A stretch of DNA of 64,000 nucleotides, from the NCBI GenBank assembly GCA_047495785.1, contig JBLDXI010000007.1, positions 806,001 through 870,000 on the forward strand, given 5' to 3'. The notes under the pieces are model-generated. The model saw only the letters and a list, made by a program, of their open reading frames with translations. It ran no database searches and was not told where the DNA came from. The DNA is from Lepidodermella squamata. Lineage: Eukaryota; Animalia; Gastrotricha. Every line of letters starts with the position of its first letter. Position 1 is the stretch's first letter. Shown here piece after piece: positions 14,977 to 64,000 of the stretch. Both the position numbers and the translations under genes were made by a program.

Positions 14977-16314
14977 TCATATGCAAGTGTCGTTTTGTGT
15001 CACATAAATTTCGTCGAGTGACAGAAAATTCGAAAGAACGCGAGGCAGATCGAGGCTTCGAATCGCAGCCGGGCGACTTTTCGGTCCAACAGGAAGCCGG
15101 CTCAGCACAACAAATCGGCAACAATGCTGCAGCGAGAGCGGAAATTTTGCGCGGAAAAAATTGCGAAACTTCATAATAGGCTCGATCTGCTCCTCCGAGT
15201 AAGGGTCATACACGTGTAAAGCAGCACGGCCGGCGGCGTTGGGTAGGTACAGGCTGGACTTGCGGCGGGCACAGATTATCATATCTGTGACAGCGTCTAG
15301 CCGGCCGAATAACTGTAGAGAAGCCCCTTCAGATTCAGGCGTTGAGCGGAAAAACGTGGCCAGGTGCGATACAAACCGGCCAAAAGCCAGCGGTTCATTA
15401 CGAAATTTCGCCCCAGCTTTCAGAAGGGGGACAACGCAGTGGCGAAGAATAGCCGCTGAGGCGTTGTAGTCACCCTGAACTTGTTCAGCATGCGCGTGGT
15501 GCATAATCGCGGCCTCGAATGATTCGTACAGGCACAAATCGATGTCTTTAAGGCAGCTGGTTGATTGATTTTCCATGGCTTCAACCAAAATTGCGACAGA
15601 TTTCGGGGCTACAACCGCTAGGCCTGACAGGTAATGCAGCGGCGTCGACGGGTTTGTGTAAATAAAATCATCGGCGAGATTCAAAATTTCAGTACCGAAG
15701 CGTTTGTGATATTCAAAAATTATGCGCGTCAATGAATTTGCGAGATTTTTCTCGTCGTGCCTACTTTGCGCTAGGCATTCTTTAATGGCGCCAATTACGC
15801 AATGCCCGGGTGCTGACGTGGTAGCGCCAAGGTCTAACAGCATCGCAACACCTCGATCGAATAGCGAAAATGTGGCAACTTGAAGCAGTGAAGTCATAAT
15901 GCAGGATGGTATTTGATAATTTTTCAAAACAGCTTCAAATTTTTCGAAATTGTAGCAATTCATCGAGCACCATAAAGCTATTTCCGAAGCCGGATTGAAT
16001 TCGGAACCAATTCCATCAATAATTTTCAACAAATCGCTGTAAACTTCAGTCGCCGCCATGCGGAGAGGCTTTTCGACCCAGATACTGCCATGAAGGTTAG
16101 GATCGACGATGTTGACGCAAAATTGCGACATGAAACAGCGCTTATCATCTTCGCCGGTTAAAAATTCGCCGCCGGGTATTTTCCGGTAATTTTCTTGAAG
16201 AGCTACCTTCAGCTGCGCGGCTGTTTTCTGCAGACCTTCGAAATAGCCGTCAGAATTTGCTACAACGCAATCGCTATCTCGGCAAATTGTTTTGTGGTAG
16301 TATTTCCAAGACAT
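14977..16314 (-). CDS. SOCS-box protein with degenerate ankyrin repeats (ASB-like), paralog 1, intronless
   Basis: 445 aa; C-terminal PLSLQHCCRFVVLSRL...LDLPRVLSNFL SOCS box; VAMLLDLGA and TPLHYL ankyrin-like motifs. Confidence 0.85.
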   Translation of the reverse strand: MSWKYYHKTICRDSDCVVANSDGYFEGLQKTAAQLKVALQENYRKIPGGEFLTGEDDKRCFMSQFCVNIVDPNLHGSIWVEKPLRMAATEVYSDLLKIIDGIGSEFNPASEIALWCSMNCYNFEKFEAVLKNYQIPSCIMTSLLQVATFSLFDRGVAMLLDLGATTSAPGHCVIGAIKECLAQSRHDEKNLANSLTRIIFEYHKRFGTEILNLADDFIYTNPSTPLHYLSGLAVVAPKSVAILVEAMENQSTSCLKDIDLCLYESFEAAIMHHAHAEQVQGDYNASAAILRHCVVPLLKAGAKFRNEPLAFGRFVSHLATFFRSTPESEGASLQLFGRLDAVTDMIICARRKSSLYLPNAAGRAALHVYDPYSEEQIEPIMKFRNFFRAKFPLSLQHCCRFVVLSRLPVGPKSRPAAIRSLDLPRVLSNFLSLDEIYVTQNDTCI

Positions 16315-16699
16315 GTGTGTGAGTTATAGACGCGGAAAAGAAGTGTTTCAGCTACAACATTGGTTGCTTGGTTTCTAAGGCCTGTTGCTCTTGCTATTGG
16401 CGTAGAATAGTTTTTACTGTGCCCATTCTCCCCAACATTATGCCGCCGCTACTATGTAATACTAACACAGTTTGAGTGACGACCACAGCGCTGGCGGCAT
16501 CCAATTCATAACGAGTTTGAACACACGAATTGTGATAATAAAAAGATGATTCGAATGCCAAAGGCTCGCAGCTAAGCCTTATATTATATGAAGCTGCAAA
16601 TTATTGAGCTGGGAATTTGAAACCGATCTTATACTAGCTCGAGTACCTTCGATTTAAACATTTTCGGGCGATGATGGTCAAATATACAAGCTGCTAGCA

Positions 16700-17381
16700 A
16701 AATCAATATTTTGAGTTTCAAACAACTTGAATTAAAACTATCGGAGCAGCGGCTTATTGTATACTGACACCTAATACGAGAGGCCTACTTCAAGAAGTTG
16801 TTTGCCAGCTGTAATTCAAAATCGATAATATCTATTGATCGAAAGGCGCACGTGAAGTCTCTGTTAGATTCTAGGACTGGGGGCAGGAAAAGAAACTCAA
16901 AGAACAATTGCCTTTATTCCACTCCTAGTTTCAGACAATTTTTTCAAAAAGCGTGTTGCTTTGTTTTGGACAACCCCAATAGAAAAACAGCCCCTCAGGG
17001 TTTCTTTAGGTTGAAGTCATTAACTGTTTACTTTTGTTAGCTGAAAAAGCCTCGGAATCAGCTCGATGAGTAGGAGGCGTTAGGCTGTTAAAATTTGAAA
17101 AATAATGCCCATCTAATAACCTATTATGAATACCTGAGCCCTTTAGCCCCACGCAGGCTTGCTTTCAACAAACAAACCGACTCAATTAAAGCGAAATTAT
17201 TCACGGAGCCAATAAAACCAAGATAGGATCCAGAAGAAGATGAAAAACTAGCCTGATTACATTTCTAAACGGCTTTAAAGCATCCACCTTAAAAATTAAC
17301 TCAACTACAAATTTGATTTAATTTCTGAACAAATTCCCTGATGATGGTTACAGCAAATAGCCGAAACGTCGGACGAATAAA
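16700..17381 (+). mobile_element. Degenerate 3' relic of a Penelope-like retroelement
   Basis: Broken RT-end-like YERPT...KAHVKSLL, an endonuclease-tail-like AFNKQTDSIKAKLF at ~17161-17205, then a hammerhead motif and AATAAA. Left boundary approximate. Confidence 0.6.
17335..17373 (+). ncRNA. Minimal type I hammerhead ribozyme (Penelope-type)
   Basis: TCC-CTGATGA-T-GGTTA(CAGCAAA)TAGCC-GAAAC-GTC-GGA: complete core, stem I TCC/GGA, stem II GGTTA/TAGCC, palindromic ACGT stem III. Confidence 0.8.
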
Positions 17382-17939: not shown

Positions 17940-20900
17940 TTAAACCAGACGATCAAGAGTCGATTCGTAGTCCGAAAAATTGATGTAATCGACCACACCT
18001 TGGGGCAGATTAAGATATTCCAGCGATTTGCGCCGAGTCAAATAGCCAATGCCAAGATTCCGCCAAACCACAACGCGACACAGCGCCATTAAAGATCGAG
18101 GGTAGACTCGTTGCAATTTCGACTTGAGATAATGATGAAAATCAGCGCCGCAAAATCCGAGCCCGTAAACGTTGTCCAAATGTTGCAGCCATTTATCAAA
18201 ATCAGCTATGGGCGGTCGAGACCCGGATAGGGCCGAAATTTCGACAAAAATCTTCAGCAAGAAATCAGCCCATTTTCGACTGCCAATCGAGTACCAAAGG
18301 CTTAGAAATAAGCAACTTAAAGGCGGGAAATCGTAAGAAAAAGGATTTCGGCTGATAACAGCTCCAGCTCTCAGTAACGGCAGTACGGCCGATTTCAAAA
18401 TTCTTGCAATTTTTTCTTTTCGCAATGAATTAGCCGCTAGAGATGCGACATCGATCAAAACTGTTTCGAGCGGCGTAGCTCGATCAAGGTGGAATAAATC
18501 GAATCGATCGATCAATCCGGATGTTAGCGATAGGCCGGAAGCTGGGGTCGATTCGATTAGGGTAGAGACAGCTTCGGAGCTTTTTAGGGCCAGATGGGCG
18601 CTATAGTGAAGAGGTATCTCGCCGGTATTCAAATCACGAGATAGGGTATCAGCTCCGAAATCGACAAGACTTTTCACCATTGAATCGACTTTCTTTGAAA
18701 TAAATTTTTCGCGGGTGAAACACTGATCGCCGATACTGCGGCGTCCATGGTTGCAGACCTGCGATGAGAAATAAAAAATAAAAATAAAAATAAAATAAAA
18801 AATAAAACCAGAAAAAATATCGTCGCCAGTAGGATTTGAACCTACGCGCGGAGACCGCATCTGATTTCTAGTCAGACCCCTTAACCACTCGGGCATAGCG
18901 ACTTGCATGCCTCTACACAAATATTTACTGCTCTTGTTGATACGACGAATTGGTTGGTCTTACTACGACCTCAACAACAATATACGTCGCACTCTTTGAA
19001 AACAGGAAATATAAAGTTATATATACCATGTGCGATGTCCAGTCTCCGAGACGAAAATTAACGGACAGTATTTGGTAATGCACAATGCACATCATCTTCT
19101 GTGCGATTTCAAGTTCGGATTTTAAATGTATGAGCAATTTGTATAACGCAGAGAAATTAGGTACATCCAGGTATCGAACGTTACATAATTTTCCAGTCGT
19201 TGTCCAATCTGTGCTTTCGCGTATAAAATTCGAAGACATTCACTTCAATAATATTGAAGTGAATATGACCGTCATAATATGATATAATATATAATAATAA
19301 TAATATAATAATATAATAATAATATAATATATATAATATATCATATTATGACGGTCATATTCACTTCAATATTATACTTAGCTATACTAAACCGCTTTGA
19401 CAAACCTCGAAATCGGTCCTACTTAACCCGAAGACGACTCCCTTTTTAATGAAATGATTCGGAAATACTACAACTCAATTTCACAAATGAGTCGTGGCAA
19501 CTGATTCCGACCCTTCTTCACGCGTTGGTCTAATTAAAACGCGAAGCACTCATTTGATGCTGGTTTTATGCTTGTTTCTATCAAATTTCAGGTGAAAGGT
19601 GCTGTGTGGGTACTTTTTGGGAATCAACTTATTTTTAGAATTTTTTTGCCGAATTTAGGAAGGCAGAGAATTCAATATCTGTCCACAGAGAGGCACTATT
19701 TGCTAGGTTAATGCTTTCAACACAAAAACAACGGCTTAATTTGAAACGAACAACTAGCTACGCGTGGATCTGCGCATCAGAAAATAGCAACTTAACGCTC
19801 GGACCACATCCGATGCAATATATGTATGGATAAATGCAGAAGAGGGACAGAAAAAGATCGACTATGTCGGTTGCTCGCACAACCCCCGAAGTGAGAACCG
19901 ATGCTTCATCATTATAGCCACCTAACAAGGCGCAAGCGAACTTCGTGATCAAAACTGACTTGGCAACAAGCTCAGCAGAAAATAAGTTCAAGTTTCCGGA
20001 TGAAAGGCACCCGACATACTCCGAAAAGTCTCACATTTCAACATTTTAAATCAAGACAGTCTAGACTACTGTTGATCTCGAGGACATACTTCTCCGTTAT
20101 TTTTACATTTTTGTCTCAGAAATGCTGCTGATAGTATTTATGTTTATTCAGCGAACTGTTTCGGCTCAAACAGTTTTCAAGCCTTACAGATTGTCGCTAC
20201 TTTCGATAAACGCTTTTACAGGATACGACCCAAGGGATAATTTGTTATGCAAGGCTTCCCAGCAATTGGTTATTGACATCATTAACAACAGGACAGATTT
20301 ACTACCCGACTACAAAATTGAACTCAATTTCGCGAATGAAGGCCCTGGTGGAAACTTCGCCCCAAAAGTAGCTGTTGAGTACATCCGAAAAATGGAGGAC
20401 ATGCCTGATCCCAATCTGTACCCTGCGCCATTGAACATGGGCCCACTTCTAGCAGGCGGTTGCAAAAGTTGGGGAATGATGCCTAGCTATTTCAATATGG
20501 TAACTCTCGTTTCATCCTGCACTGCTCCGTCCCAAATCGCTCGCCGTTCGTTGTACCCCAACATCTTTAGGCCGCGATGTTCTGCCGAATTGTCCTTATA
20601 CTCGAGGATGCATTTCATCAAGAAAATGACCCCATGGCGACGCATAGCCTTGACGATGAATCTCAACACAAATCCTTTCAACTTCGAAACCGCATTGCTT
20701 TTCCACAAAATAGCGACTAATGAAGGATTTGAAGTTGTAACGTTCGAAGCGAGTCCGGATTTCAACGATGAAGTCATGGCCGCGCTGAAAAGGCTCGACA
20801 TTCGAATTTTCACACACGAAGCGGCGGAATCAATCGCTGGAATACGATTTTTATGCCAAGCTTTCAGGGCCGGGATGAGAGGACCGAAATATTTTTTCCT

Positions 20901-23808
20901 ATTCCAGTTCACCAGTTATGTCAATCCTGATTCAATAGCGACTGACGCCTACCCGCCAGGATGTACAAAAGAAATGATTTACGAGCAAACTAAACAGGCC
21001 TTGTACATTGGGATCCCCGTTGAAGCTGTAGGACGTGAGAACAGTGATGATAGGACAACTCTTGGTCATACTTTAAGAGATTTCGAAGCTCTGTTCGACA
21101 AATACACTAACGGCTACAGATCCCCAGACTACGATTTCCGCCACATGTGCTACGATAGAGCCCTGCAGGGGGCGATAATTCTCGATAAGACGGAAAAGTT
21201 GTTGGCAAAGCAAAATCTATCACTGAGAGATTATCGGAAATTTCCGCGCGAAGTGATGTTGGCGACAAACCAAAGTGCAGCTGAGATAGACTTCTGGAAC
21301 CTTCGGCATGGTCGTTTCCGTTATTCTAAACGGCTCGAATTCGATAATGAGCCTCAAATAGTCACCCGTTGGACGCCGGAAGCTGGTTTGCAACTACTAG
21401 GCAAAATTTCATGCCGCGAAAATTCGACGGCGACAAGCGCAGATTCTTACGAAATCACTCGAATCGATAAGAATTTTCAATGGATTTTCCCACGAGATAA
21501 TGCATTGAAAAATACTGTTATTATCGATATTTCTTGGCAAATTTTCGGCATAATAGCGGGGTCAGCAATTTTAATTTCCTTTTTCCAACTTTCCATACTG
21601 ATCAGAATTTTGATGGCTGAAATCAATAACCATGACAAGCCTATCGCATTAGTAAGTATGGCAATTGTCCTAGCTGCCCTAAATTTGAATGGAACGGCTG
21701 TGGCTTTTATTTTCCCGAATGACCTCGCTTCTCCAGACGGATCTTGCGTCACTAGGGCGGTGATGCTTGTACTAGGGATATCGACGCTACACAGTTGTAT
21801 GAGCATGGTCCTTTTCCGGGTTCACAGAAATCTTCCGGCGCAAACGTTGCTAATGTCGCGAAGCTCAAATTTGCTTCAGACGGCGAATGTTTCGGAGCGA
21901 CCGACACGTACAGCTCAAATTCCTATCGGAAGGGCTTCGATAGTAGCGCCGCGATCTGTCGCGCCGACAAACGAATTATTGCCAACATATGCAGGCCAAA
22001 TACGGCGGGTGTCGGTAGTCAGCCTGCAAGGGGAGGCAACCACGCCTGTGAGGAGGAAATCGTCCGTCGTAACTATGCCGAACCCTCCCGAGCCGATTGG
22101 AACTAACAACCGCGAAGTTCTCCTACCTTCGTTATGTTTCCTAATGGTGAATGTCGGGGTTTTAGCGGCGTGGTTGATATCTGACCCCCTAACAGCTGCC
22201 GAAGTCGTGATTGGCAATCAACTGTATGATGAGCTAACGGACACGTACTCGACATATATTGGCACTGTCTGCCGAAGTAGTTCGGGGGAAGTGTGGGCGG
22301 CTGCTTTATTCGGCTTGAATGCGATTCCGCTGATCGTGGGCATTTTCTGCGCTTTGAAGCTGCGCTATAACAAGCGATCGGCATCTATGCCGGATTTGCG
22401 TTTCTATCAAGTAGCTATCATTTTCTCCGCCTCGCTGTACGGCTGTGCTTTTGGCGCTGTTTTCATCGTAGTGCCCGGAGTACTTCCGCAAATTATTGTC
22501 GCAGTTTCAGTTTTGATCTATTCGCTAAGTTTGAGCCTGGTTACCTGCTACCCAACTGCGAGGGTTCTGTTCTCAAGAGAAACAAGACGAACTTCGGAAA
22601 GTTCGCAGTTTTGACGAAATTGGCGAAAGGCTCGGTCTAAATCGACTCAAAACTTCATTGTACAACAGTTCTAATTCAAATTCAAATGTGCTCCCAGCCA
22701 ATAAAAACGCAAAAAAACAACAGATAACAAACAAAAAATATCTTCTTTTAAAATGAAAAATCAGGGTTCTAACATTAAGCACAAGATTTCTCCTTAATTT
22801 GTTTTTTTGAATTTTACACCTTCCCTTGAATCAAGTAAAAAATTAAAGCTACCAAGACCTCAATTTTAGGGGTGCAAATACGAAGACCCTTAGCTACAGC
22901 GTGTCCCATAAGTAACACAAGCAAAGAAAATACACGGAATAGGGTTCAGAAACTCTAAAATGAGAGACGAAGGCACATCTCACGGCCAGAAAATTTTTAG
23001 AAAAATTGAAAAATCACGAGAATAGTAATCAAGTGAGTCACGTTAATCGTTAATGGGATTAAAAAAGTTCGGAGAAATTTGGTCCAACCGGGTAAAATAC
23101 CGAATAGTACCGAACCAGTTACCATCGGGGTTTTGCCGGGTTTTCTCCGGAAACATGGAATATTTTCTCGGTAGGTTTATTTAAAAAATTGTTGAAATTC
23201 CTACAAAAATTTGCCAAATAAAAAAATTGTTGCGCAACTTCTGGGACACGCTGTATTACTAAATTTATTTTCACCTGAAATAGCGGAAAATAACGCTGAC
23301 CATCACCGATCGCCACATCTGCCGATGCGCCGTGAAGGAGGAGGATTCGAACCCCAGCATCGAAGTAGCACTCAATCGCCCGGTGCAATAGCGCCGCCAT
23401 CAGGCATTGCGGAATTTTGCCCTCCTTTCGCCGAACCAACGTCATCTCCAGCAAATAAGCATCGCCAACACTGACCGCATACCACAACAGCAACTCGAAT
23501 CGGCAGAATGACAACTCGGAGAATTGCATCAACTGATTGGCGAAAATGTGATAGGCTGAATACAACTCATTTCCGTTGACTTCCTTGACAGGTTCCAGTA
23601 TCAGTGTCTTCCCACCATGATTTTCAGGGGCTGCCAGCAGCAAACCGTGGAATGACTCGGTTTTGCAATCTTCTACTACTCCGATGTTGCAAACGCTTGA
23701 AGTCTTGTTCGGTTGATGGGCAAGGCTCGCGGTTTTATGAAGCCCTTCAAAATAGCCCGGTAGCGTAAAAACGCAATTTTCACCAAGTAAACACTGAGAA
23801 AATTCCAT
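17940..23808 (-). CDS. SOCS-box/degenerate ankyrin protein, paralog 2; exons 23808-23275 and 18758-17940 (450 aa)
   Basis: Phase-0 intron CAG|GTGAAA ... TCTCATCGCAG|GTC. The joined YFPLFQ|VCNHG aligns with the uninterrupted DFPIIRLCYDG of paralog 3. SOCS box PRSLMALCRVVV...LNLPQGVVDYI. Confidence 0.85.
18821..18902 (-). tRNA. tRNA-Ser(AGA), copy 2 (intronic)
   Basis: Reverse complement of 4667-4748, T-run downstream. Confidence 0.95.
19248..19375. repeat. 39-bp inverted repeat around a pure A/T spacer
   Basis: ATAATATTGAAGTGAATATGACCGTCATAATATGATATA (19248-19286) and its reverse complement (19337-19375). Confidence 0.9.
20122..22614 (+). CDS. Class C GPCR, GABA-B-like, paralog B, intronless, nested antisense in the intron of SOCS paralog 2
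   Basis: 830-aa ORF closely similar to 4978-7464 along its whole length; AATAAA at ~22700. Confidence 0.87.
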   Translation: MLLIVFMFIQRTVSAQTVFKPYRLSLLSINAFTGYDPRDNLLCKASQQLVIDIINNRTDLLPDYKIELNFANEGPGGNFAPKVAVEYIRKMEDMPDPNLYPAPLNMGPLLAGGCKSWGMMPSYFNMVTLVSSCTAPSQIARRSLYPNIFRPRCSAELSLYSRMHFIKKMTPWRRIALTMNLNTNPFNFETALLFHKIATNEGFEVVTFEASPDFNDEVMAALKRLDIRIFTHEAAESIAGIRFLCQAFRAGMRGPKYFFLFQFTSYVNPDSIATDAYPPGCTKEMIYEQTKQALYIGIPVEAVGRENSDDRTTLGHTLRDFEALFDKYTNGYRSPDYDFRHMCYDRALQGAIILDKTEKLLAKQNLSLRDYRKFPREVMLATNQSAAEIDFWNLRHGRFRYSKRLEFDNEPQIVTRWTPEAGLQLLGKISCRENSTATSADSYEITRIDKNFQWIFPRDNALKNTVIIDISWQIFGIIAGSAILISFFQLSILIRILMAEINNHDKPIALVSMAIVLAALNLNGTAVAFIFPNDLASPDGSCVTRAVMLVLGISTLHSCMSMVLFRVHRNLPAQTLLMSRSSNLLQTANVSERPTRTAQIPIGRASIVAPRSVAPTNELLPTYAGQIRRVSVVSLQGEATTPVRRKSSVVTMPNPPEPIGTNNREVLLPSLCFLMVNVGVLAAWLISDPLTAAEVVIGNQLYDELTDTYSTYIGTVCRSSSGEVWAAALFGLNAIPLIVGIFCALKLRYNKRSASMPDLRFYQVAIIFSASLYGCAFGAVFIVVPGVLPQIIVAVSVLIYSLSLSLVTCYPTARVLFSRETRRTSESSQF
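22897..23253. mobile_element. Tc1/mariner-type MITE
   Basis: 12-bp TIR CAGCGTGTCCCA/TGGGACACGCTG with TA on both sides; an inverted, diverged second copy lies at ~59270-59606. Confidence 0.8.
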
Positions 23809-23975: not shown

Positions 23976-25825
23976 CTAAGAATTAAGCATTCGCAGGAGG
24001 TAGTTATGCTCGCCAAAAATGAGATAATCGTTGATTGGTAAAGGGATTAGTCGATTTGGTGGAGAGCAGAGTTTCGAAATCGCGACGTGCCTAGCAATGT
24101 AACCAGCGGGGAGTTGCTTCAAGACAGTGCGTCGAGCTAGCTGGCGTAACGAAAGAGGGTATCGAGTTCGGATGTTGTCGAGAAAACGAAGCGCGTAACT
24201 ATTCCAGCCGATGAGCTCCAATCGCTTCAAATGATCACTGCACTTTTTGATATTTACAGAAGCACTTGCTCGCAGATCGACGATGAGGTCGAAAATGCGA
24301 CTCGGCCAATTTAAACCATCAATGCCGTGAACCAGCCAGCTTAACATACAAAATCTGACGATTGCACGAAGTTCTATAAAATTAAAAAAATATTACTAAA
24401 ATACCGGACGAGTTGAACTTGGAAAATTTTGGATTTGCAGGTGAATACAATTTTTTTTACATTTTTTGGTTTTGGACAGTATTAATTATAAGCTGATGAG
24501 AGCGATTTTTTTCTTGAATTGCTTAAAAATTCGACCCGAATTCGAGGGGCGAACCTCCTCACACCGCTGCATATGCAAATGGGCGGCCAAAGTAACATAT
24601 AATTTTTCAATTTTCACAAATAATATCAATAGGAAATTACCAAAAATGAGACAAAAATGAAAATAAATTAAAAATTAGCAGAAAAATCAGGAATGCCATT
24701 GCCAAAAAATTGTTCGAATTGTTCTTACGAAAGTTCATTTATAACCTACGAAAACAAGGTTTTGCTTATAGATATCACTCGATAGGGTATCATTAATGTT
24801 GGAAATTTCAACAACAAAATATTCTTACCCATATCACTTTTGGGACAGAATGGGTCGCGCTCCATTCGAACGCCACTACGCAACAGCGGCAAGACGGCTC
24901 CTTCTAGAATTCTAGCCACCTTGAAAGACCGATTCGGATCATCGCCCGCCGTCGCTAGAGCCGCATCCAAAAACGCAACTTCAATCGAATTCGCTTTGAT
25001 GTAGCCAAATTTACGCCTCAGCCGGGCGATGTAGTTCGAATGAAGATTCAGATAGCTTGCCGGGGTGCTCAGGATAATCAACTGTGAAGCATTCGCACTT
25101 CGAAGCGCAAGGTGACTGACGAAATGAATCGGGAGCTCACGCGATTTTGTCAGCGGCGTCGATAGAGTTGCGCCATTTTCAATCAAATATCTCAAGGTCA
25201 GGTCAACCGAATTCGACAAAGGGTTCCTAACCCGACCGTGGTTGTGATAGATCTCAGCATCGCGAATCGGAGCTCCGTCGTAACACAGTCGAATGATGGG
25301 GAAATCTCGAATTTTCGAACCAAGAGCTAAATCGGGCGAAACGCCATAGCGAAGCAGAAGCATGACACCCTCCTCAAATTTCGAGTCGATGCATCGCCTT
25401 AACAGCGCCGCTAAAATGCATTTAGGAATGACAAACGGATGGTTGTCCAGGGTTACTTTCAAATGTTCAGGCGTTCGGCTGCAAATCGAGCACCAGAGCA
25501 GAATTTCGATTCGACAATCAGCGAAACCAGGTGTGCTAGGCATTAAAGCTTCGATAATTTTTCGGTACAGGAAATGAGCTTCGGAGTATGACAGCCGTCT
25601 AGGTGAGTGGAGCAGCAAATGCGAATCGCGTAGGTCAGGGGAGGTCAGGGTTAGCCCGTCAAGTTCGCCGCTGTTTTTCGCTTCGATTACAGAACAGTCG
25701 GCACGTGAGCACATTTTACGCATGACCTCGCGATAGGCGTCCAGCGCTGTCGAACGAAGATCAGTGTCATAATTCTCCCGAGTGAGAGGACAACCAGGTT
25801 GGCATATAATATGCTTGTGAATCAT
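23976..25825 (-). CDS. SOCS-box/degenerate ankyrin protein, paralog 3; exons 25825-24829 and 24373-23976 (464 aa)
   Basis: Phase-1 intron G|GTAAGA...TTTTATAG|AA keeps the frame; SOCS box PLSLRQLARRTVLKQL...IPLPINDYL. Confidence 0.85.
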
Positions 25826-40569: not shown

Positions 40570-41570
40570 TCATTCTCTAGCGATACCTTTCGCAACCAGC
40601 CTCAACATTTTCGCTTTCTGAAAACAAAAAAAAATAAAATTAATTCGACAGTAAAAGAACATAGGTATGATTGCTTGCTGTGATCACAGCTTTGGCGTGG
40701 CTAGGAAAGCCGAATTGGACAGATCTCAAGCTGCAACTGTTGTCGCTGCCGAAATATTTGGTTCCAACCGGGTAGTCGGCAAAAACCGTCACGTTAAAAG
40801 GATTTTCGGCAATCTACCGCAAAAACATAGATATATCGGGAAAGAAATCGGTGGAAAGTTACATCAAAATATCGGTGGTCGAGTACTTTCAAGTCACCGT
40901 CGTAAAATGTCACTTCGCCAATCGAAAAACAGTAAAAGATTAAGGGCGGCTTTAGAATGTTGACCGGCTGGCAGGGGAAGCAGACGAAATAAATCAAACA
41001 AAAGTCTAAATTATGAAACAGACCACTTCGATACTGCTTGGAATTTTCATCAGCCAAGACTTGTGCCACCCACTGAAAGCAACGCATTGATATTCGGTAT
41101 CATCGCAGAAAAACGCTGGGCTAAAATCGAGAGATTTCGCTTTTTCGCGGGGAGAAGTTCTCGGCGAGTTTGTTCTAGCTCGAGCGGCGGTCGCGATTGG
41201 ATAATATCTGAATATAGGTTCCGTAGTCAGGGCATTTCGAAAACCTTCCAAGGCTCCATTTATTCGAAAGAGATGCAGAGCAGGCTCTAGGCCAAATTCA
41301 CGAATTATCAACCGTTTCCACAAAATAGAACTTCTTGTAAATTGGTACCAGCTAAAACAAAGAGCGTTTGGCCTGCGAAGGTTATACTCAAGCTCTGATT
41401 TACCTTTTTGAAACAACGGCACAAGATAAGAACAAGTCCCTTGGTCGGAGATTCAAGAATATTTCAACCAAAATTTCCACCGGGAAAACAGACAAGGGGT
41501 CTATCAAAGCGGTATGAAGGGGAGGCTCAGTCGATGCAGGTTGGTATCGCTTGTATTCGATTTCATTCAT
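40570..41570 (-). CDS. F-box / middle domain gene lacking ankyrin repeats, unit 5 (truncated, possibly a pseudogene)
   Basis: Exons 1-4 are open (DPLSVFPVEILVEIFLNL; DYPVGTKYF...FGFPS). The last exon encodes only KAKMLRLVAKGIARE-stop, and only ~530 bp remain before unit 4. Confidence 0.7.
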
Positions 41571-51261: not shown

Positions 51262-51349
51262 ACATCAAAACTCTACAAAAATTTAAATTCGTAGAAAAAT
51301 GGGTAAATATAAGTCGAATGAAGTACGAAATACAGGAGAAATGAAAAAG

Positions 51350-53170
51350 TTATTTCGATGCGAAATTTTCCAAAATACCGATGATTCCAAGGTCTGGTTT
51401 CTCTTTGAACTCAATCTTGGCCAACTGCAGCGGAGTTAGGCGTTTGCTATTTTTCGCCTCCTTATCAGCCCCGTTTTCCAGCAGCATTCGAACAGCATCA
51501 GGCCTGGCCCGTTCAACCATTCGATGCAATGGCCTCATTTTTACGGAGTTCCGAACTATTTCCACATTAACGTCAATACCATGGTCGATCAACGCCTTGA
51601 GACGAGGTTCAGGGTGAATATATTCAAGAGCGAGATCCAACACAGTTTCGCCGTGTTTATTCCGCCGATTCATATCAGCCCCTTTGGCGAGGAAATACTT
51701 GACAGAATCGATGATTTGATACTTGGCAGAAATCATTAACAAAGTATTGCCGTCGTTATCCGTGCAATTCACGTCGAGGCCGTGTTCAAGGAAAGTGTCG
51801 AAAATGACCTTCGAAATCGTGTGGGTTACCCGCATGCCTTCAGCGAGCACATTTTCGCCGAGATACGTCGACTTAACATCAGCCCCGTGATCGATAAACA
51901 TTTTAACGGCGGTTTTGTGGTTTTTGCGAACAGCCAAATGAAGAGGGCCAGGCCCAGCGCCGTTTCTGATAAATTCGGCCAAAACGTATTTCGGTAATTC
52001 GAGAGAAATCGCCTCGCTAAAAACGGATCCGTAGAAGAACAAATCGTTTGGCTGGTAGATGAAGGACGGCTCTTCGCTCAAGATTGATCGAATTTGCTTG
52101 AGTTGATCAGATTTTTTGATATTTCCACCCTTGTTTTCGCAAGCAGCTATTAAATCTCGGCGCTAAAATGGTAAGATTTGAAAATTCAATATAAATAATT
52201 ATTAATTAATACATAAATCAGCATATCGACATAGCTTGGGAAAAGCACCCGAAAATACTTCAGCTTTCCAGTCGAATTCGAGCAGATAAATCTCAAACCA
52301 GGCGGATAATTGTCAATCACGAAAAATTCTGAATCCCATTCCTGAAATTAACTGTATTTTTATACATTTTTATTAATTTCACACTGGACTCAAAATTAGC
52401 ATTTTATAAATTAATTTAAAAATTTTCAAACCAACCCGGGGTATGTTTACGCTTGCGATACATTTGTATTTAGAGTCCATCAGAAAAACTTTGCATTGGC
52501 TAGATTTGACCAAAATAGTAGGCTGGAACGCATCAAAGGCCTGAAAAGTAAGGCTGAAACACAAATTTCCACTTGAAAGACTTCTAAAACCTGTTCGCAA
52601 GACGTTGGAATCCTCGCCAGCCAATAATTCGCGTCGAACATCTGACTTATTGCGCATCTGCGATTCTCATTTCCAGCCATGTAATGCGGCAATTTGTTAC
52701 AAGCCAACTGAATTAAATTTTTCACGGAATCCGGTTCAACGTATAGCCCTTTAAATTCTTCAAGCCTGTCGAATTGATCTGTCACGCAAGGGCTGAACAT
52801 TTGGTGGGTTGTCAAAGACTGGTAAAGCGATTGCGCTGAGCCTCCTGATGTCAAAAACTGTTGCACATGATCGCGGCTGAACTCGACCATCAAGAGTCGC
52901 TCGAGAAAATAATCGCTCGTTAAATATCTGTGCCATCTGAAAAAATAAACCGGAGATATTTGTCCAACTCGAATAAAGTTGGATATACCGTTTGGATACA
53001 AGGCACAAATTGAGAAATATCTCCTTGCTGCGAAAGCATACGAATATTTCCGCCGCAATTTCGGGCGAGAAAACAGATAAAGGATCGACCGATTGATAGC
53101 GCGATCGCTTGGCTGACTGCTCTTCAACAAGATTTGAGGAGCGTCGGCGTTTTCCAGATAAAGTTTTCAT
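51350..53170 (-). CDS. F-box / middle domain / ankyrin protein, unit 9 (5 exons)
   Basis: F-box DPLSVFSPEIAAEIF; exon 4 NYPPGLRFI...VLFPS; ANK exon starting RRDLIAAC. Confidence 0.83.
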
Positions 53171-54122: not shown

Positions 54123-55776
54123 TCATTTGCCAGCAACAAATTTTCTTTTTAGAGTTTTTAGAATGCCGGGGAAGGGTATTGCGTAATCGAACGCTGTTTT
54201 TCCAAAGCTGTCAGCGAGATACGGATCAGCACCATGTTCCAAAAGCAATTTGACTCCATCCTCACTCATTTTATATATCATGTTGTTTAACGGAAGGTCA
54301 TCAATAGGCTTATTAGGATCCGCGCCGGCCTCAAGGAGTACCTTCATCCTGGGTTCGGGCTTTTGCGCCAGGGAAATTGCAATATTTAGCGCGGTTGCAC
54401 CTTCGCAGTTTCTGCTCGCCACATCTGCGCCTTGTTTGATCAAAAATCTCACGATACCAATCGATTGAAAACCAGCGGCATACATCAGCATCGTATAACC
54501 TTGTTTATCAGACGTATTAACATCGAACCCAGCCTTGATAAAAGCAGCGATTATCGCCTTAGAAACAGTCTCATAGTGGAGACTGAGCAGCAATAAATTG
54601 TCCCCCTTGCCATTAACCGAATCAGGACTGACACCATGAGAGAGTAGGAATTTCACGGCATCGGCATTGTTCGACGATAAAGCGGCCTGAAGAGCTGTAG
54701 GGCCATCGAAATAGGCACCGCGGGAATAAAATTCATTCAGCACGGCTACGGAAGCGTCTTTTAAAATCGCTCTGAAAAACATGGAATTTTTTAATTCTGC
54801 ACATGTATTCTTGCGATTAATAAGGCTCGGAGCTTCATCTAACAAGGCTCGAACTTGTTCTAATAAATTAGCGGGAGAGATGTCGAGTAATTCGCGCATA
54901 CTTTGACGCTAAAAATACGAAAATATAGTCGAATTTCAACAAAAATATCTCAGATTTCACCGCGTCAAGAAAAAGCGCCAAACTCGGAAAAACGATCCGA
55001 ATAGACTCAATTTTGCTCGACGAAGCAGAACCGATGAATCGAGTTCCGCTAGGATAATTATCCAAGAGCCAAACTTCACGCGCTTCACGATAAAAATCAG
55101 CCTACAATAATCAGACTTCAATTCGAAATTTTTTTGGGATGGAAATCAAACATGGCCCTTCACTATTTGCTTCAGTTTATTCATTTCAGCGTCGTAGAAT
55201 GAGATGATACTCGCGGCAATGCAATCTAACGCAATAACTGGTTTCAGGTAGTCGAAAACCTGGCATGCAAAAATTTTTCAAGATAAATAAAAAATCCTGG
55301 CAATTTAATTTTACCTGTGGACATCCGCCTGGCAATCCGACCATCCACCAATTTTCTTGGTCATTGATCATGAAAAAATTGTTGAACACTCGATCGTGAA
55401 CGGATTCATATGAATTGCGATTTAAAGGCCGAAATAACTTCGAGGTAGCCAGGGCATGGCGAAGCGAGTCGAGCGCCCCTCCAATTGACAGAAATTGGCG
55501 AGCTTTTTCTGGCCCGAATTCGAGAAAAATCAAGCTTTCCCATAGCAAATCACCTGTGATCAAATTGTGCCAACTGAGAAACAGAAATCCGGAAAATAAT
55601 CAAGGTTATTTTGCCATTTTATAAAACCTTTTTGACACGATACTGCAGATGAGGAAAATTTCGTACTGGCGTAAATTCAACAAAATTTCGACCATTATCT
55701 CTTTCGGCAGAAATTTAGCGGGATCGATTAAGACAGGCGGCTCATCCAAGTTGAACCTGCGTTTCCGACAAGCCAT
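54123..55776 (-). CDS. F-box / middle domain / ankyrin protein, unit 10 (5 exons)
   Basis: F-box DPAKFLPKEIMVEILLNL; exon 4 NYPSGTRFI...IVFPSL; ANK exon. Confidence 0.85.
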
Positions 55777-56144: not shown

Positions 56145-57823
56145 TCATTTGCCTGCAACAGCTTCCGTTTCCAAGAGTTTCAACAGGAACGGGTAGTCTT
56201 TCGCGCATTCAAACGCAGTTTTGCCACGGCTGTCAGTGAGACGTGGATCAGCACCGTGCTCCAAAAGCATTTTTACCCCGTCTTTGCTCCTTTTTCGTAT
56301 CATCTGATGCAGCGGAGGGTCATCTCTAGGATGATTCGGGTCCGCGCCAGCTTCCAGTAGAACTTTTATCCTCGGCTCGGGAATTTTCGTGATGCTCAAC
56401 GCAATATCTAAAGCACATGTTCCATCGCTACTTTTTAGCTTAGCATCGGTGCCTTTTTTGACAAAAAACCGGACGATATCGATTGACTGAGAGGCGGTCG
56501 CATTCATCAACAGTGTATAACCATCGCTATCGGCCGTATTAACATCCAAGCCAGCCTTAATGAAAGCATCGATGATAGTCTTGTTAGCCGGGCTTCGAGA
56601 GCGGAGATTAGCAACTAACAAATTCTCGCCAGCGGAATTCTTCGATTGAGCATCGGCGCCATGAGAGAATAGGAATTTCACGGTATTAGCATTGTTCGAC
56701 GACAAAGCAGTTTCCAGAGCGATTCGGCTATCGAAATAAGCCCCGCGAGAAACAAATTCTGTCAAAATTTCCTTGGACGCATTTTTCGAAATCGCCTTGT
56801 AAAATATCGACTTTTTGAACCGAATGCCGTTACCCTTGCGATTGATAATACCGGGAGCTTTGTCAAGCATGCATCGAACTTCGTCCAATTCAGGTGGGAA
56901 GTTGTTTTCGTTAAACAAATTGCTCAATTTGCGTTGCTGGAAATGCGAAAATATTATTGATTTTCGACCGATAATAATCAAAATTAAACCGTGTCGAGAA
57001 ACAGCGCCAAACTTGGAAACGCAATTCGAATATAATCAATTACGCCTGAGCTATCAGAGCCGATGAACCGTGTACCATCGGGGTAATCATCCAAGAGCAA
57101 AAGTTCAGTAGATTCATCGTCATCGAGAAAAACATCGTAATCTAACTGTAATATACATCAAAGTTGAGATAAATCTGACACATTTTTCGCCACCGAAAAA
57201 CTAACACTGCGGTCTAAATGCCCGAGTTTGTTCATTTTTGAGTCATAAAATGAGATGGTGCAATTGGGATCGCAATCCAGTACAATAACAGGTTTCAAGC
57301 AGTCAAATGCCTGTATAGTGAAAATTATTAAAAAAACACCCAAAAATTTAAAAATGTAATTTACCTGAGAACATCCCACCGGCAGTCCGACCAACCACCA
57401 ATCCTCTTCGAGATTGTACATATATAAATGTTTGAAAACCCGATCGCTAATGGATGCATATGAATTCCGAGTATGGTGCTGGACTAATTTGGAAGTAGCA
57501 AGAGCATGGCGAAGCGAGTCGAGCGCCCCTTCAATCAACAGAAACCGTCGCGCCTTCTCAGGCCCGAATTCGCGGTAAATCACGCCCTCCCACAGCAAAT
57601 CGCTCTTTATTACATTGTGCCATCTGAATAAAATCCAAGTGAAAGTTAAATTTCAAATTCAAATTATAGCAAACCCTTTCGAAACGAGGTTGCAGTTGAC
57701 GAAAATTTCAGGCAAGCGCAAATTCAAGAGAATTTCCACCATCACCTCTTTAGGCAGCAATTCGATAGGATCAATGAATACAGGGGGAATGTCCACATCC
57801 AACTTGCGTTTACGATTGGCCAT
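56145..57823 (-). CDS. F-box / middle domain / ankyrin protein, unit 11 (close duplicate of unit 10)
   Basis: F-box DPIELLPKEVMVEILLNL; shares GALDSLRHALATSKL, FPSLALFLD and the C-terminal VAGK with unit 10. Confidence 0.85.
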
Positions 57824-57995: not shown

Positions 57996-59075
57996 TTAGT
58001 TGTTCGATATTTTGATGGCTTTTTCCAAGATTTCAATAATACCATTGTCGTCCCTGTTGATGTAGTAAATCTCGGCCAATTCCAAAGGGGTCAGATCATC
58101 GCTGCTCTTCAAATTCGGATCAGCCCCGTGTTCAAGCAACAAACGAATAGCATCCGGGCGGCCTTTCAGAACCATTTTGTGCAACGGCTTCAATACACGA
58201 GGCTTCTTTTTCAGTTCGTATTCCATATTACGACACAATTTGTGTTTCACTCTTCCATTGTGTAGCCAGCCACTCGATTCGTCGCACGCTTCGATTGGAG
58301 CATCTTTGGGGAGCTCCTTAATTCTCGTTGATTGGATATTACAATCAACATTCGGATCGGCTCCTTTTTCCAATATCAATTTCATCCTCGGCTCAGGTTG
58401 TCGATGATCCATGGCGAAGAGCAAGGCCGAATAGTCACCCTTATTTGACCCCAAAACGTTAGCTCCTTTTCCGACCAGTATCGAACAGTTTCGATTTTCT
58501 GAGTTTTCACGGCCGTCATTAACAGAGTGTTTTTCATAATAATCCGTCAAATTGACATCTAGCGCGGCGTCGATCAAAGCGTCGATGATTTTTGAGGAAC
58601 GCTTTTGTCATACAAAACTCTGAGGAGGCTATTAGCGATTTCAATTTTTTCGAATTTCAGAAGAATTCCATGTTCCAGTAACACATTGACCGCCGCAGGA
58701 TTCCCAACGGAGACAGCTGTTGCAAAATTTCGAGGATCAAATCGAGAAAAAATCGCAAAACTTCTTTTGGAATGTTCGGCCGATTGGCCGTTCGGAGCCG
58801 AATTCGCGAATGATTAGCCTTTGCCAAAAAATCGTGACTCTAAAGAAAATTTCCCCGCCTAAAATCAAGATAAGAGGAAAATTATCCGATAACTGAATAG
58901 TTGGATCGATAAATAGACCTTTCGCAAACCAGATTTCAACATTCAAACAGCTGGCGGTATTTAGATGAAGAAGTATCTCGATCAAAACGTCGCGTTGTAA
59001 GTGGGACATGGGATCAAAACCAGTTGCAACGTCCTCATGGGCACATCGGCCCTGTAAACAATCGCCCTCTTCCAT
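57996..59075 (-). pseudogene. F-box/ankyrin pseudogene, unit 12 (internal deletion plus frameshifts)
   Basis: F-box DPMSHLQRDVLIEILLHL and the start of exon 2 (FWQRLIIREFG) run into mid-ANK sequence (FATAVSVGNPAAVNVLLEHG) in another frame; exons 3-4 are missing. Confidence 0.75.
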
Positions 59076-60096: not shown

Positions 60097-61532
60097 CTAT
60101 AAAGTGCCTTCATGATTCGCGCCAGACTTTAACAATAAATTTTGAAAAGATTCTCCAATTTTGAGATCCACAGCCAGCTTCAACGCAGATTCGCCGCTGT
60201 TATTAACCGCGTTGACATTCGCGCCTTTCGATATTAAAAACGAGGCTGCTTCCAAGGATCGAGTTTTAACAGCAATAATTAACGGCGTGTTGCCAAAAGC
60301 GTCGGTTTTATTCACATCGGCGCCGTTATCAATCAGGAGCTCGAGTAGGGACTTTGAACATGGCTGGCAAAGCACCAACAACGGTTGGCCAGTTCCATCG
60401 ACCATATTCGCATCGCCTCCTTTCTCCAGAAAAACGGCAGTCGATGTCATAAAATGATTCCGAGTCGCAAAAATGAGTCCTTCCCTCAACAGAACGGCGT
60501 TGTTGTTGAAAAATACTTCCAAAATATCGCGATTTTGCTTCGAAATAGCCGTTGCGAGTGGGGTGTTGTCGAAACTTCGACTGAATAACGGAGCATATGG
60601 TTGGTAAGCCAATCGAGGATTCCTCCTTAAAATCGACTCAATAATTTGCACATCGCCATATGCTGCTTTTTGATTCAACGACCAGGCCTTGAAAATTAAT
60701 GCTAAATTACTGGAAAAGTCAAATAATGCAGAAACAAACAAGTTCAAGAGTTGAGCCAAAACTCGGCATGAAAAGTCGCATTTCGACCTTATTCACTCGC
60801 CTATCAGGAACAACAAAACGAGCCCCGCAAGGGTAAGATCGAAGGTACATCCACTCGCCATTATTCTAAAAATGTAGAAAAATTCCGCAAAATGCAACGA
60901 TAAAAAAGCTGGACCTACCAGCTTTGGCCCCAAAATATTCAGCTCTTCGTCCAGGTACAAAAAATTGTCGGTACCCTCGTAGATAGGCATTTTCAAAATA
61001 TCAAGTGCCTGAATTTCAAAATATTTTTCCATCACAATTTAACAGAAAGAAAACGAATTCTAACCTCAGGACAACGAGAGGGTAATTTTAGCATCCACCA
61101 TGACGCGTGATAACAAGTTCGAACACAGGCAATAGGCGACAAAGGGTCGTTAACAAATTCCGGGAAATGCGACTTGACGGCGGCAGTGAAATCTTCCAAC
61201 GAGCCATGACCATGAAAATCGTAAATAGTTCGGCGATTTTCAGGCTTGTAAAACGGCCGGAAAATTTTGTTATCGCAGAGATCCGCCCTGAGTCGATCCA
61301 AGGCGCCGCCGATACTCAAAAATTTAGCGGCTCGATCGGCGCCGAATTCGAATATGATGAAGCCTTCCCAAAAGTACCTGCTATCAATAAATTCGTGCCA
61401 TTTTCGGCTGACGGCTTTGCAAGTTTTGAAGATGTCTTCATTGCCAAGAAGTAGAAGAATACGAACGGCGATATGCGACGGTAGCCGCAATAACAGGTCT
61501 CTAGGGCATGCTTCAAAATCATTGGAGGCCAT
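60097..61532 (-). CDS. F-box / middle domain / ankyrin protein, unit 13 (4 exons)
   Basis: F-box LLRLPSHIAVRILLLL continues without an intron into WHEFIDSRYFW; exon SYPCGARFV...FMPSF; ANK exon starting AWSLNQK. Confidence 0.83.
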
Positions 61533-61734
61533 TAACTCAACTAAATTAATAATTAAAAAAATTGAAACAATAAGAAGGACTTTTCCAATTTTCATGGAAG
61601 TAAAAAAACTGATAAGTATTTAATGATTCCTCATTCCACAGTGGTAATAAGTAGTAAAAATGAAAGAAGCTTATACAGACAGGTCAACAAAATAATAATA
61701 CACCGTCAGATACAAACAAGCTCAACAACATTAA

Positions 61735-63407
61735 TTAGCTTCGAAAATTCTTCTGCGAATAAGATTTCAACAAATCAATGATATGGGACTCATTTGCATA
61801 ATAAACCGCGTCACTTCCGTCTTCGTTAACCTGACCTACATCGGCACCTCGGGTCAACAGATAGACAATCGAATCCATTTCGCATGATTTAACAGCTTTG
61901 ATCAGCAAAGTATCGCCTAATCTGTCGATTTCATTGATATTCGCCCCATGTTCAACCAGCAAATCGAGAGAAGACGATCGAAATCCGTGGATTTGATGGA
62001 AAAGTCCTTGGCTCAACAGAGACAGCCCATCAATAGCTCGAGCATTAGGATCGCCGCCATTTTTCAAATAAATTCTCACGACTTCGGTCGAATTGCGCCG
62101 AAGCGCATAAGCGGCAGCATTTGGGGTGATAACTCCGCCATGATTGCATATGGACTCGAGAATTCTGTAGTTATTCCGCCAAACTGCATGAGCTACAGGG
62201 CCGTGATTAAAGCTGAAATCGCCATGAGATTCAAGGTTGAAATCGTAAAATGGCTCCAAGCCATAAGCAACAACAATTTCAGGGTCTTGCTGAAGGATTT
62301 CATTAACACCATTCTCGAATCCGCGAGAAATATTTTTACACAAATTAAATCTCTGCAAAATGAAAAACGTAAAAAAATATGAAAAATGGGTTCATTACAT
62401 ACCATTGAGTTAATTCGAAACAGACTTGGGAGAACAAATCGCAGAGAGAGTCCTATTAAATCGTGGCTCCAGGCTATGAATCGAACGCCAGTTGGATAGT
62501 CAGTAACGCCTCGGAACAAATTTAGAGCGTAACGCTGAGCTGTATCGCTTAATGGAAACTACGTTTCACGAAAAATTGAAATTTCCTCGAAATTTAGAAA
62601 AAATGACAATTACCGTGATTTTTTGAAGTTCGCGCAAATCTTTATCAAGTAAATAAATTGACCGATCGCTACCCATGACCATCAAAACTTTGATTTGCAT
62701 AGGAATTCGCAGGTCATCAATAGCCTTAAATATTCTGTTCTTGAAAAATATTTCTGAAATAAAAATGCAAACCTGATATAGACCAGATGGGATTTTGTAG
62801 AGCCACCAGCAATTGAAGTGTTCTTTATTGCTGACAAATAGCTGGTTGATATCAGCATCATCTCGCGTTGTATGTGGAAATGTTTCAACGGTGACGCGCA
62901 AAAATTCAGCCAAGCTCGGGTCACTAGACCCATCGGTGTCTTCGGCGGTGTCACGGTAATTCTGTGACGCGAAAACTACGGTTGCTTGCTTTTTCGAGGC
63001 TTTGTCCAAGAAATTGGGCCGAAAAACTGCCCCGAATTGCAACTTGGATCTCAACTGATGAAGAGCAGTTGCTGATGACAGAAATGTCCTAGCCCTAGCC
63101 GAATCAAATTCTCTAAAAACCAGGTCTTGAAAAAAGTAATCGCTGGCTAGATAGGCGCTCCATCTAAAATCGAAAATTCATTTCGAATAATTTTGAAAAT
63201 TTGTGCAGAAAATACTTACGCTTTACAGACCAACGAACAGTTGAGGTACAAATCAGAATTTCGGACCAGCAAAAATATGTGCTTTCTCAATTCCGGAGGT
63301 AGAGCGAATAAAATATCGAACGATTCCGAATGATCAAAATTTGACGACTTTGAAGGCGGAGAATCAGGGTGACAAGCATTCGAGATGCTACGCTTTCTAT
63401 TTTCCAT
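61735..63407 (-). CDS. F-box / middle domain / ankyrin protein, unit 14 (5 exons)
   Basis: F-box ILFALPPELRKHIFLLV; exon 4 DYPTGVRFI...VLPSL; ANK exon starting RFNLCKNI. Confidence 0.83.
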
Positions 63408-63575
63408 CAATTTCAGTTCAGTGGTAAAAATCAGTTCGTCATTTAAAATCAATCTAGGCATAGGTAGAGAGTGAGCGCTTTATTCAAATTATAACATCGA
63501 AATGAGCATATTATGATAAAAATTCTTCGATTGCACAAGAAAGCTCAACAATTGATTTGAAAAAGTAAAAAATGA

Positions 63576-64000
63576 TTACTGGTTAGTATGAGATTGCAAA
63601 AGCTTCCGAATTTCATCCTCAGGATCCCACTTAATCGCGTAGTCCAACGCGGTGCAACCATCCGAATCCTTGACATTCACATCAGCTTTGCGTTTCAACA
63701 AAACCTTGATCGCTTCTGCATTACGTCGCCTCGTGGCGATGATCAGCGCAGTTGATGTAGCTCCTTTGCCAAGACTACACACCGTATTCGGATCGAGACC
63801 AGCTTCAAAAATGGCAGCGTATCGGGAAACAGGAGCAAAATTAAGCATGTTTTTTCCTTTCTTGTTGACGCGGCTCAAATCAGCCCCGTGGGACATTAGC
63901 GCCCGTAACGGGTCAATTATCGAATAATCCGCAGCTTTCATAGCCAAAGTATCGCCATTTACATCAGTCTCATTAACGTCAGCCCCAGCAGATATCAGAG
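63576..64000 (-). CDS. Ankyrin-repeat last exon of unit 15 (gene continues beyond the window)
   Basis: GADVNETD, TALIIA, ADVNVKDSDGCTALDYA; same strand and spacing as the other units. Confidence 0.7.
   Translation of the reverse strand, partial: LISAGADVNETDVNGDTLAMKAADYSIIDPLRALMSHGADLSRVNKKGKNMLNFAPVSRYAAIFEAGLDPNTVCSLGKGATSTALIIATRRRNAEAIKVLLKRKADVNVKDSDGCTALDYAIKWDPEDEIRKLLQSHTNQ

Follow-up and report, generated by a model that had tools for sequence, protein, structure and literature searches.

What are the genes of a long tandem array in the gastrotrich Lepidodermella squamata that couple an F-box to ankyrin repeats, and what kind of repertoire do they form? The array lies in a 64,000-nucleotide stretch (the window) of the 121-Mb assembly GCA_047495785.1, at positions 806,001-870,000 of contig JBLDXI010000007.1 (C7), next to four SOCS-box genes. 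A reading made from the sequence alone had proposed a cluster of diversifying ubiquitin-ligase adaptors, each composed of an F-box, a region X and ankyrin repeats, which would feed two cullin systems and possibly serve in defence against pathogens or transposons. We found that X is homologous to the FBA domain and that the family descends from F-box proteins of the FBXO2/6/44 class. In our judgement the array is probably a lineage-restricted tandem family of putative SCF (Skp1-Cul1-F-box) substrate receptors of this descent that forms a stable repertoire. The part of the earlier proposal that called these genes cullin-RING adaptor families of a design unusual for animals was thus upheld, whereas the words "diversifying" and "defence" found no support.

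A tandem array of five-exon genes

Scanning of the window by tblastn and with hidden Markov models (HMMs) of the exons placed 15 units head to tail on the minus strand between 28,771 and 64,000, as the sequence-only reading (at least 15 units, same strand and arrangement) had it. Six-frame open reading frames (ORFs) and their Pfam matches showed, from 28,771 to the window end, a repeated series of an F-box-like ORF, an ORF of ~110 residues of unknown type and an ankyrin ORF of ~230 residues. A tblastn search that used a single copy of each part as query found 14 F-box/X blocks and 15 ankyrin blocks, every one on the minus strand. The exon HMMs built from the window were also run over C7:870,001-980,000. 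Across the window and this extension they found 46 groupings with the exon order E1-E5, all on the minus strand, from window position 28,777 to extended coordinate 154,170 (C7:960,170; extended coordinates count on past the window). These correspond to about 43 units, fragments included, within 125 kb, so that the array is real but larger than had been noted, ending 90 kb past the window. The E2 profile gave 61 matches in the genome.

Nine of the 15 window units (U2, U3, U5, U7, U8, U9, U10, U12 and U13) have all five blocks in open frames. The other six comprise one unit with a weak E4, two with kilobase insertions in introns, one lacking the ankyrin exon, one decayed pseudogene and one cut by the window end; birth-and-death products are indeed present. 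Nearest-paralog relations showed that units 16-21 are colinear with units 36-43, and part of the array is therefore an old multi-gene block duplication.

The unit was found to consist of five exons, which encode a basic N-terminus and the start of the F-box (E1), the end of the F-box and segment X1 (E2), segment X2 (E3), segment X3 (E4) and six to seven ankyrin repeats (E5). In U13, which was read base by base, E1 extends to 63220 and is followed by E2 (63163-62773), E3 (62724-62614), E4 (62558-62403) and E5 (62352-61738). The first intron (63164-63219, 56 nt, phase 2) splits the F-box, and the last (62353-62402, 50 nt) precedes the ankyrin exon. Contigs assembled from the sequencing run X1, which is labelled RNA by guess only, omit exactly 63164-63219 and 62353-62402, each with minus-strand GT-AG ends. 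In one contig the segment that stops at 62614 is followed by the first letters of E4, which joins E3 to E4. A further joint, 60867/60922, is the E3-E4 intron of U12. Run X1 was taken as cDNA-like because contigs without introns are what cDNA yields; its depth falls between U13 and U12 and is zero at 58.4-59.8 kb, at the pseudogene U11.

The phase-2 intron, 50-85 nt long, occupies the same F-box site in those 12 units of the window where it is retained (it is lost in U12, and U11 is decayed) and is followed by phase-0 introns. In an intronless paralog on contig C24 (L012:2788-4125, hereafter L012), a single ORF of 446 residues comprises E1-like, E2-like and ankyrin parts, with Pfam matches to F-box-like (E 3.9e-7, 30.2 bits) and Ank_2 (E 1.3e-21). 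The F-box-X-ankyrin architecture is thus real, being borne out by run X1 joints that indicate one spliced transcript and by the single ORF of L012. Two details had to be revised. Each unit has not two or three exons but five, as U13, the run X1 contigs and the exon HMMs all showed; and X is not ~110 residues long but spans ~200 residues across E2, E3 and E4, so that the region originally called X is only the first third of it.

The distance from a stop codon to the first in-frame ATG of the next unit on the same strand is often just 70-350 nt, and short inter-unit gaps were observed, for example, at window positions 49092-49161, 51261-51350 and 61595-61735. When the 200 nt ahead of each of 42 units were searched for a promoter motif in common, AT-rich words were all that emerged. 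The sole inverted piece in the array is a plus-strand fragment, E1 and the start of E2, at extended coordinates 136,695-136,924 (C7 ~942,700). The insertion in U6 carries plus-strand ORFs, one of which (45697-46152) matches the Phage_integrase family (tyrosine recombinase) in Pfam and suggests a Crypton- or DIRS-like element; the insertion in U4 (37.6-39.4 kb) carries plus-strand ORFs without a Pfam match.

The F-box, the FBA-derived region and the ankyrin repeats

The F-box was evaluated with the Pfam models PF00646 and PF12937. In U12, the window unit whose F-box is unsplit by an intron, it scored 29.4 bits against a cut-off of 24.3, and among the F-box proteins of PDB the family profile matched FBXO44 best (E 1.7e-8), with FBXO6 at E 1.2e-7. 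The array proteins are predicted to bind Skp1-Cul1. Genome-wide, the F-box-like model gave at least 78 matches, many of them to a group of genes on contig C11 (see below) and few to array units, because an intron splits the F-box of the latter. Since this count is a lower bound that includes the C11 genes and few array units, the family probably makes up a large share of the genome's F-box genes. Skp1 is present in two copies, at C20:2439414 and C32:2552343. The E5 exons matched the Pfam models Ank_2, Ank, Ank_3, Ank_4 and Ank_5, with E-values between 1e-13 and 1e-29, and substrates would be recognised by the ankyrin module, the FBA-like module or both. In 33 of 42 units, the N-terminus before the F-box has a cluster of three K/R residues in a span of four positions, often as MPPRKRKN. 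This cluster resembles a classical monopartite nuclear localisation signal (NLS), kept despite saturating divergence, and the array proteins may accordingly be nuclear.

The fold of X was modelled by AlphaFold2 (AF2), using the F-box/X part of L012 and 63 paralogous rows (alignment A3) as input. The model (pLDDT 79.5, pTM 0.73) begins with the helices of the F-box, which a helical linker connects to a domain of mainly beta structure at residues ~105-260, with helical insertions in the sandwich. A Foldseek search of PDB returned FBXO44, Fbs1 and Fbs2 as the top four matches (E 3.5e-5 to 7.8e-4); further down came sugar-binding domains of Fbs1 in isolation and other lectins of the galactose-binding type. 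Among 48,161 representatives compared by VIA-align, the top two were Fbs2 (Z 6.5, 180 residues) and, on its own, the sugar-binding domain of Fbs1 (Z 6.2, rmsd 3.9, 114 residues). In the ESM Atlas, the second listed row of the shape search was a chordate F-box/FBA cluster (TM 0.43/0.41), look-alikes included an ankyrin cluster of poxviruses and ascomycete ankyrin clusters labelled "F-box domain-containing", and the feature search picked up the ankyrin and F-box parts but nothing else.

Profile comparison yielded the same relationship. The genome contains canonical FBA genes on contigs C74 (PF04300 E 1.8e-45) and C9, and three in-genome canonical FBA genes served as the FBA side of the comparison because database homologs were not found. 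Aligned to them by hhalign with the F-box included, the family gave a probability of 97.9% (E 5e-13, 220 columns); once the F-box had been taken out of both profiles, the probability was still 82% (E 1e-5, 97 columns), whereas controls with a reversed profile and 20 column-shuffled profiles gave at most 0.9%. Exon E3 of the array alone matched FBA at 85% (E 6e-6), and E4 matched at E 1e-3 at the colinear DYPpGvR (DYPxGVR) strand. The search for wider homologs was negative: the E2 exon profile found none among 1.84 billion representative proteins, the two matches at E >7e-5 being spurious; word-indexed searches with the SOCS-box gene S1, a canonical FBA gene and the F-box/X part of L012 gave no match; and a full-text literature search found no paper describing the F-box/FBA/ankyrin architecture.

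The family has no equivalent of the glycan-binding loop. The profile alignments stop at FBA position 177 of 204, ahead of the "VDTQGW.GH.GAKF" of the genome's canonical genes, and what follows in family members is a short strand that terminates in (W/L)PS; in Fbs1 the sugar-contacting loop near the C-terminus is the Y-W-K region. X is very probably, on fold model and profile together, a divergent FBA-type sandwich that is likely glycan-blind. The sequence-only reading had set an F-box with ankyrin repeats outside the standard animal classes; because X is FBA-derived, the family instead comes from a standard animal class, FBXO2/6/17/27/44, to which ankyrin repeats were added, and is not an unrelated design.

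FBA-type F-box proteins are a small family of glycoprotein-sensing ligase receptors. With these proteins (Fbs/FBG, PF04300) the array genes share the order of F-box, helical linker and what is predicted to be a beta-sandwich, and FBXO2/6/17/27/44 proteins provide the best sequence and fold matches in PDB; the DYPxGVR strand is common to the array and the in-genome canonical FBA genes. The array genes differ in being missed by the Pfam FBA model and in an alignment that halts before the chitobiose-binding loop of Fbs1, with no equivalent motif. They also have helical insertions in the modelled sandwich, a C-terminal block of six to seven ankyrin repeats and ~43 tandem copies rather than a handful. 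Paralogs of the array lie on at least 10 other contigs, and a few copies are dispersed. A sister branch on C11 comprises ~25 intronless genes of 250-330 residues. These encode an F-box, X and a tail that is acidic and often ends in Cys, and they lack ankyrin repeats, which shows X to be a separate domain.

Divergence, selection and competing explanations

Divergence between units is high. The mean pairwise amino acid identity ranges from 31 to 48% by exon, with 48% for E1 (F-box), 43% for E4 (X3), 34.5% for E3 (X2), 34% for E5 (ankyrin) and 32% for E2 (F-box end and X1), and the ankyrin exons of the closest pairs reach 76% identity at most. Taken with the nine fully open units, this bears out the description of highly divergent copies with mostly intact frames. 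Synonymous divergence (dS) and the ratio of nonsynonymous to synonymous divergence (dN/dS) were calculated by the Nei-Gojobori method for the 11 closest pairs. Across exons dS ranged from ~0.5 to beyond saturation, with 0.6-1.4 in the ankyrin exon, and dN/dS was 0.07-0.37 in every exon, with 0.19-0.29 in the ankyrin exon and 0.07-0.25 in the F-box exon. The fastest-changing exon in close pairs was that of the linker and segment X1, not the ankyrin exon.

Ankyrin repeat positions were assigned by an ungapped consensus scan, with positions 2, 3, 5, 13, 14 and 33 taken as the binding face. The pooled dN/dS was 0.24 at the binding face, 0.21 in the framework and 0.26-0.30 elsewhere. In the closest pairs, neither young copies nor accelerated binding-face change could be seen, by a test that is crude with dS near saturation. 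The term "diversifying" does not fit closest pairs with dS of 0.6-1.4 and dN/dS of 0.2-0.3 in the ankyrin exon and no excess at the binding face. These values amount to the uniform purifying selection that had been named beforehand as a counter-argument to a defence role. Because the copies are old and conserved, a role in an arms race is unsupported.

Several results weigh against the interpretation of the array as FBA-derived, spliced and stable genes. The fold matches, at Z 6-6.5, fall in the range that the tool calls "middling", with TM-scores of 0.25-0.43, and the modelled fold is that of L012, an intronless and distant paralog, rather than that of an array gene. Exon E2, which holds the first half of X, has no similarity to FBA. 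The Pfam FBA model found nothing in seven family members even when matches up to E 1 were admitted, and across the genome PF04300 picked out the canonical genes on C74 and C9 and no others. The RNA-like evidence consists of contigs of one run of guessed type and covers three units only. The power to detect site-specific positive selection is low because dS is near saturation.

The array might instead serve diversifying recognition of pathogens or transposons, with a positively selected ankyrin face and two cullins acting jointly through the SOCS-box neighbours. The size of the tandem array and its birth-and-death products, the very high divergence among its copies and the further expanded E3-adaptor families of the same genome would all agree with this, nematode and plant F-box expansions are an established precedent, and the NLS-like motif would suit surveillance of nuclear invaders. 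We nevertheless consider it unlikely, given that the closest pairs have dS of 0.6-1.4 and dN/dS of 0.19-0.37 in all exons, that binding face and framework (0.24 versus 0.21) hardly differ, that no young duplicates exist (top ankyrin identity 76%), that the linker/X1 exon and not the ankyrin exon changes fastest in close pairs, and that SOCS genes are common enough genome-wide to make adjacency weak evidence. A more specific form of the idea, in which the more than 40 genes encode nuclear-targeted, two-module SCF adaptors (a glycan-blind FBA, an ankyrin arm and an NLS) that recognise, with other expanded E3-adaptor families, foreign or selfish nuclear proteins of viruses and transposons, is a speculation to which we give little credence.

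It also seems improbable that the proteins are not cullin-dependent degraders, their F-box merely tethering Skp1 in non-SCF complexes or the proteins acting as nuclear ankyrin scaffolds or decoys. Two Skp1 genes for at least 78 F-box-like matches and an FBA-like domain without the known ligand loop would be compatible with such a role, but the F-box exon is the most conserved (48% mean identity, dN/dS 0.07-0.25) and the family profile matches bona fide SCF receptors. That the array is an assembly artefact, or foreign DNA such as an integrated segment of a giant virus or symbiont with many ankyrin and F-box genes, is an idea already largely refuted and hardly credible. Poxviruses, giant viruses and Legionella typically pair ankyrin repeats with an F-box, and the poxvirus ankyrin cluster among the ESM Atlas look-alikes points the same way; against it stand conserved spliceosomal introns of fixed phase, a GC content equal to that of the flanks (~0.41 in the window, with no strong shift along the 64 kb), the paralogs on other contigs, a canonical FBA relative in the same genome and an even DNA-run depth of ~100 on a 4.66-Mb contig.

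The reading of the array as a stable family of SCF receptors would imply the following course. An FBXO2/6/44-type F-box/FBA gene most likely gained an ankyrin exon, and the predicted product would run from a short basic, NLS-like N-terminus through the F-box, the helical linker and an FBA-type beta-sandwich without the FBXO2 glycan loop to the six to seven ankyrin repeats. Duplication of single units and of multi-unit blocks would then have enlarged the array to ~43 units in 125 kb. With copies that are old and under purifying selection, the outcome would be a stable repertoire of distinct receptors, not a fast-evolving one.

Neighbouring genes and known systems

The four SOCS-box genes adjoining the array (S1-S4, Table 1) had been correctly placed by the sequence-only reading. 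With the SOCS_box model PF07525 (Pfam cut-off 23.5 bits), S1 and S2 score above the cut-off, and S3 and S4 score below it yet align to S1, S4 doing so over its whole length. All four align with each other along their length, and the two pieces of S2 match S1 residues 1-~215 and ~225-445. Inspection of the SOCS boxes revealed a BC-box-like motif, S-L-x-x-x-C-x-x-x-(V/I), and an "L-P-x-x-(L/I)" box. Pfam detected no ankyrin repeats in S1-S4. The region of this family before the SOCS box aligned with the ankyrin exon of the array by hhalign (83.7%, E 8e-6, 104 columns). The AF2 model of S1 (pLDDT 68.8) was a helical repeat, for which Foldseek returned mostly generic helical repeats and weak matches to the ankyrin domains of ASB9 (E 0.17, probability 0.95) and MIB1. 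"Ankyrin-like" is a reasonable but not firm description of these proteins, judged from alignment and model.

The S1 family has at least 96 matches genome-wide, many of them on C7, and S1-type genes flank both array ends, with two more just past the far end, one on each strand. The adjacency that had prompted the idea of a joint two-cullin repertoire is therefore real, but alone it is no sign of a joint system, because two abundant families on one chromosome would often adjoin.

Within the long S2 intron, a class-C G-protein-coupled receptor gene (20122-22614, plus strand; 7tm_3 and ANF_receptor) lies antisense, and a second paralog of it was found at 4978-7500 (minus strand); the two are intronless, ~830-840 residues long and opposite in orientation. 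The ORFs at 17940-18920 (minus strand, N-terminal part) and 1797-2333 (plus strand) have translations that start with a peptide resembling read-through of a tRNA repeat ("...GLTRNQMRSPRVGSNPTG..."), which suggests a tRNA-related short interspersed element or tRNA sequence beside the last exon of S2.

Table 1. Genes and units of the window and related loci (window coordinates unless a contig or locus is named)
Feature	Coordinates	Strand	Description
S1	14977..16314	-	single-exon SOCS-box gene, 445 aa, degenerate ankyrin-like helical-repeat region; SOCS_box 33.6 bits
S2	17940..23808	-	N-terminal exon 23119-23808, C-terminal exon 17940-~18614; SOCS_box 27.1 bits
S3	23976..25825	-	two exons (24746-25825, 23976-24347); SOCS_box 18.9 bits
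S4	26101..27519	-	single-exon SOCS-box-like gene, 472 aa; SOCS_box 17.8 bits
U1	28771..30496	-	F-box/FBA-like/ankyrin unit, weak E4 (exon HMMs); Ank Pfam E 1.4e-17; phase-2 intron of 50 nt at 30265-30314
U2	31142..33053	-	complete, shorter ankyrin end (exon HMMs)
U3	33353..35218	-	complete, E4 and E5 share one open frame (exon HMMs)
U4	36646..40035	-	1.9-kb insertion between E2 and E4, E3 undetected (exon HMMs)
U4b	40640..41570	-	truncated, E1-E4 only, without ankyrin exon (tblastn, exon HMMs)
U5	41714..43943	-	complete, shorter ankyrin end (exon HMMs)
U6	44451..49092	-	2.9-kb insertion between E4 and E5, weak E3 (exon HMMs)
U7	49161..51261	-	complete (Pfam, exon HMMs)
U8	51350..53170	-	complete; nearest paralog is unit 18, 56 kb off
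U9	54123..55776	-	complete, short E2 (exon HMMs)
U10	56145..57823	-	complete, short E2 (exon HMMs)
U11	57996..59075	-	pseudogene: X domain lost, ankyrin part frameshifted (split or partial HMM matches)
U12	60097..61595	-	complete; first intron lost, E1 and E2 one ORF (Pfam F-box-like)
U13	61735..63461	-	complete five-exon unit (run X1 contigs)
U14	63576..64000	-	ankyrin exon of the next unit; remainder past the window, up to extended coordinate 67,756
XK-related membrane protein gene	L010:407-1969	-	just past the far end of the array; Pfam E 6e-55
Two S1-type SOCS-box genes past the array	L010:4461-9098	one on each strand	with the XK-related gene, the L010 stretch C7:960,407-969,098
C11 sister genes	C11:1,331,890-1,358,706 and 1,533,134-1,573,074		loci L013, L020-L026

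Comparison with other adaptor families places the array apart from each of them. In ASB proteins (ankyrin repeats and a SOCS box, cullin-RING ligase 5) as in the array proteins, the ankyrin repeats are the likely substrate arm, and S1-S4 are of this general type; the array genes, however, bear an N-terminal F-box (Cul1) and not a C-terminal SOCS box, and S1-S4 differ from ASB proteins in lacking Pfam-detectable ankyrin repeats and in having their own Cys-containing N-terminal region. An F-box with ankyrin repeats and no FBA is known from Legionella AnkB and, in reverse order, from poxvirus ANK-PRANC proteins. AnkB, the ascomycete F-box-ankyrin proteins and the ANK-PRANC proteins of poxviruses and parasitoid wasps likewise combine an F-box-type Skp1 handle with ankyrin repeats, but they do so without an intervening FBA-like domain, and no sequence tie to them past the generic domains was found. 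The order also differs from that of poxvirus ANK-PRANC: the F-box comes first and the ankyrin repeats last in every array unit and in L012.

The F-box expansions of nematodes (FBA2/FTH) and plants (FBA/FBK) likewise form large tandem arrays with pseudogenes and fragments. Those families contain many young copies and positively selected substrate-binding domains, whereas the duplicates of the array are all old and under purifying selection. The case thus tempers the reflex of reading adaptor expansions as immunity.

Of the new results, the derivation of X from the FBA domain is the most useful. Within one lineage, a ligase receptor class has been rebuilt and expanded: its FBA scaffold lost the sugar loop, gained an ankyrin arm and was multiplied. 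The more than 40 related receptors are a natural set in which to study how an FBA-like domain and ankyrin repeats may share substrate recognition.

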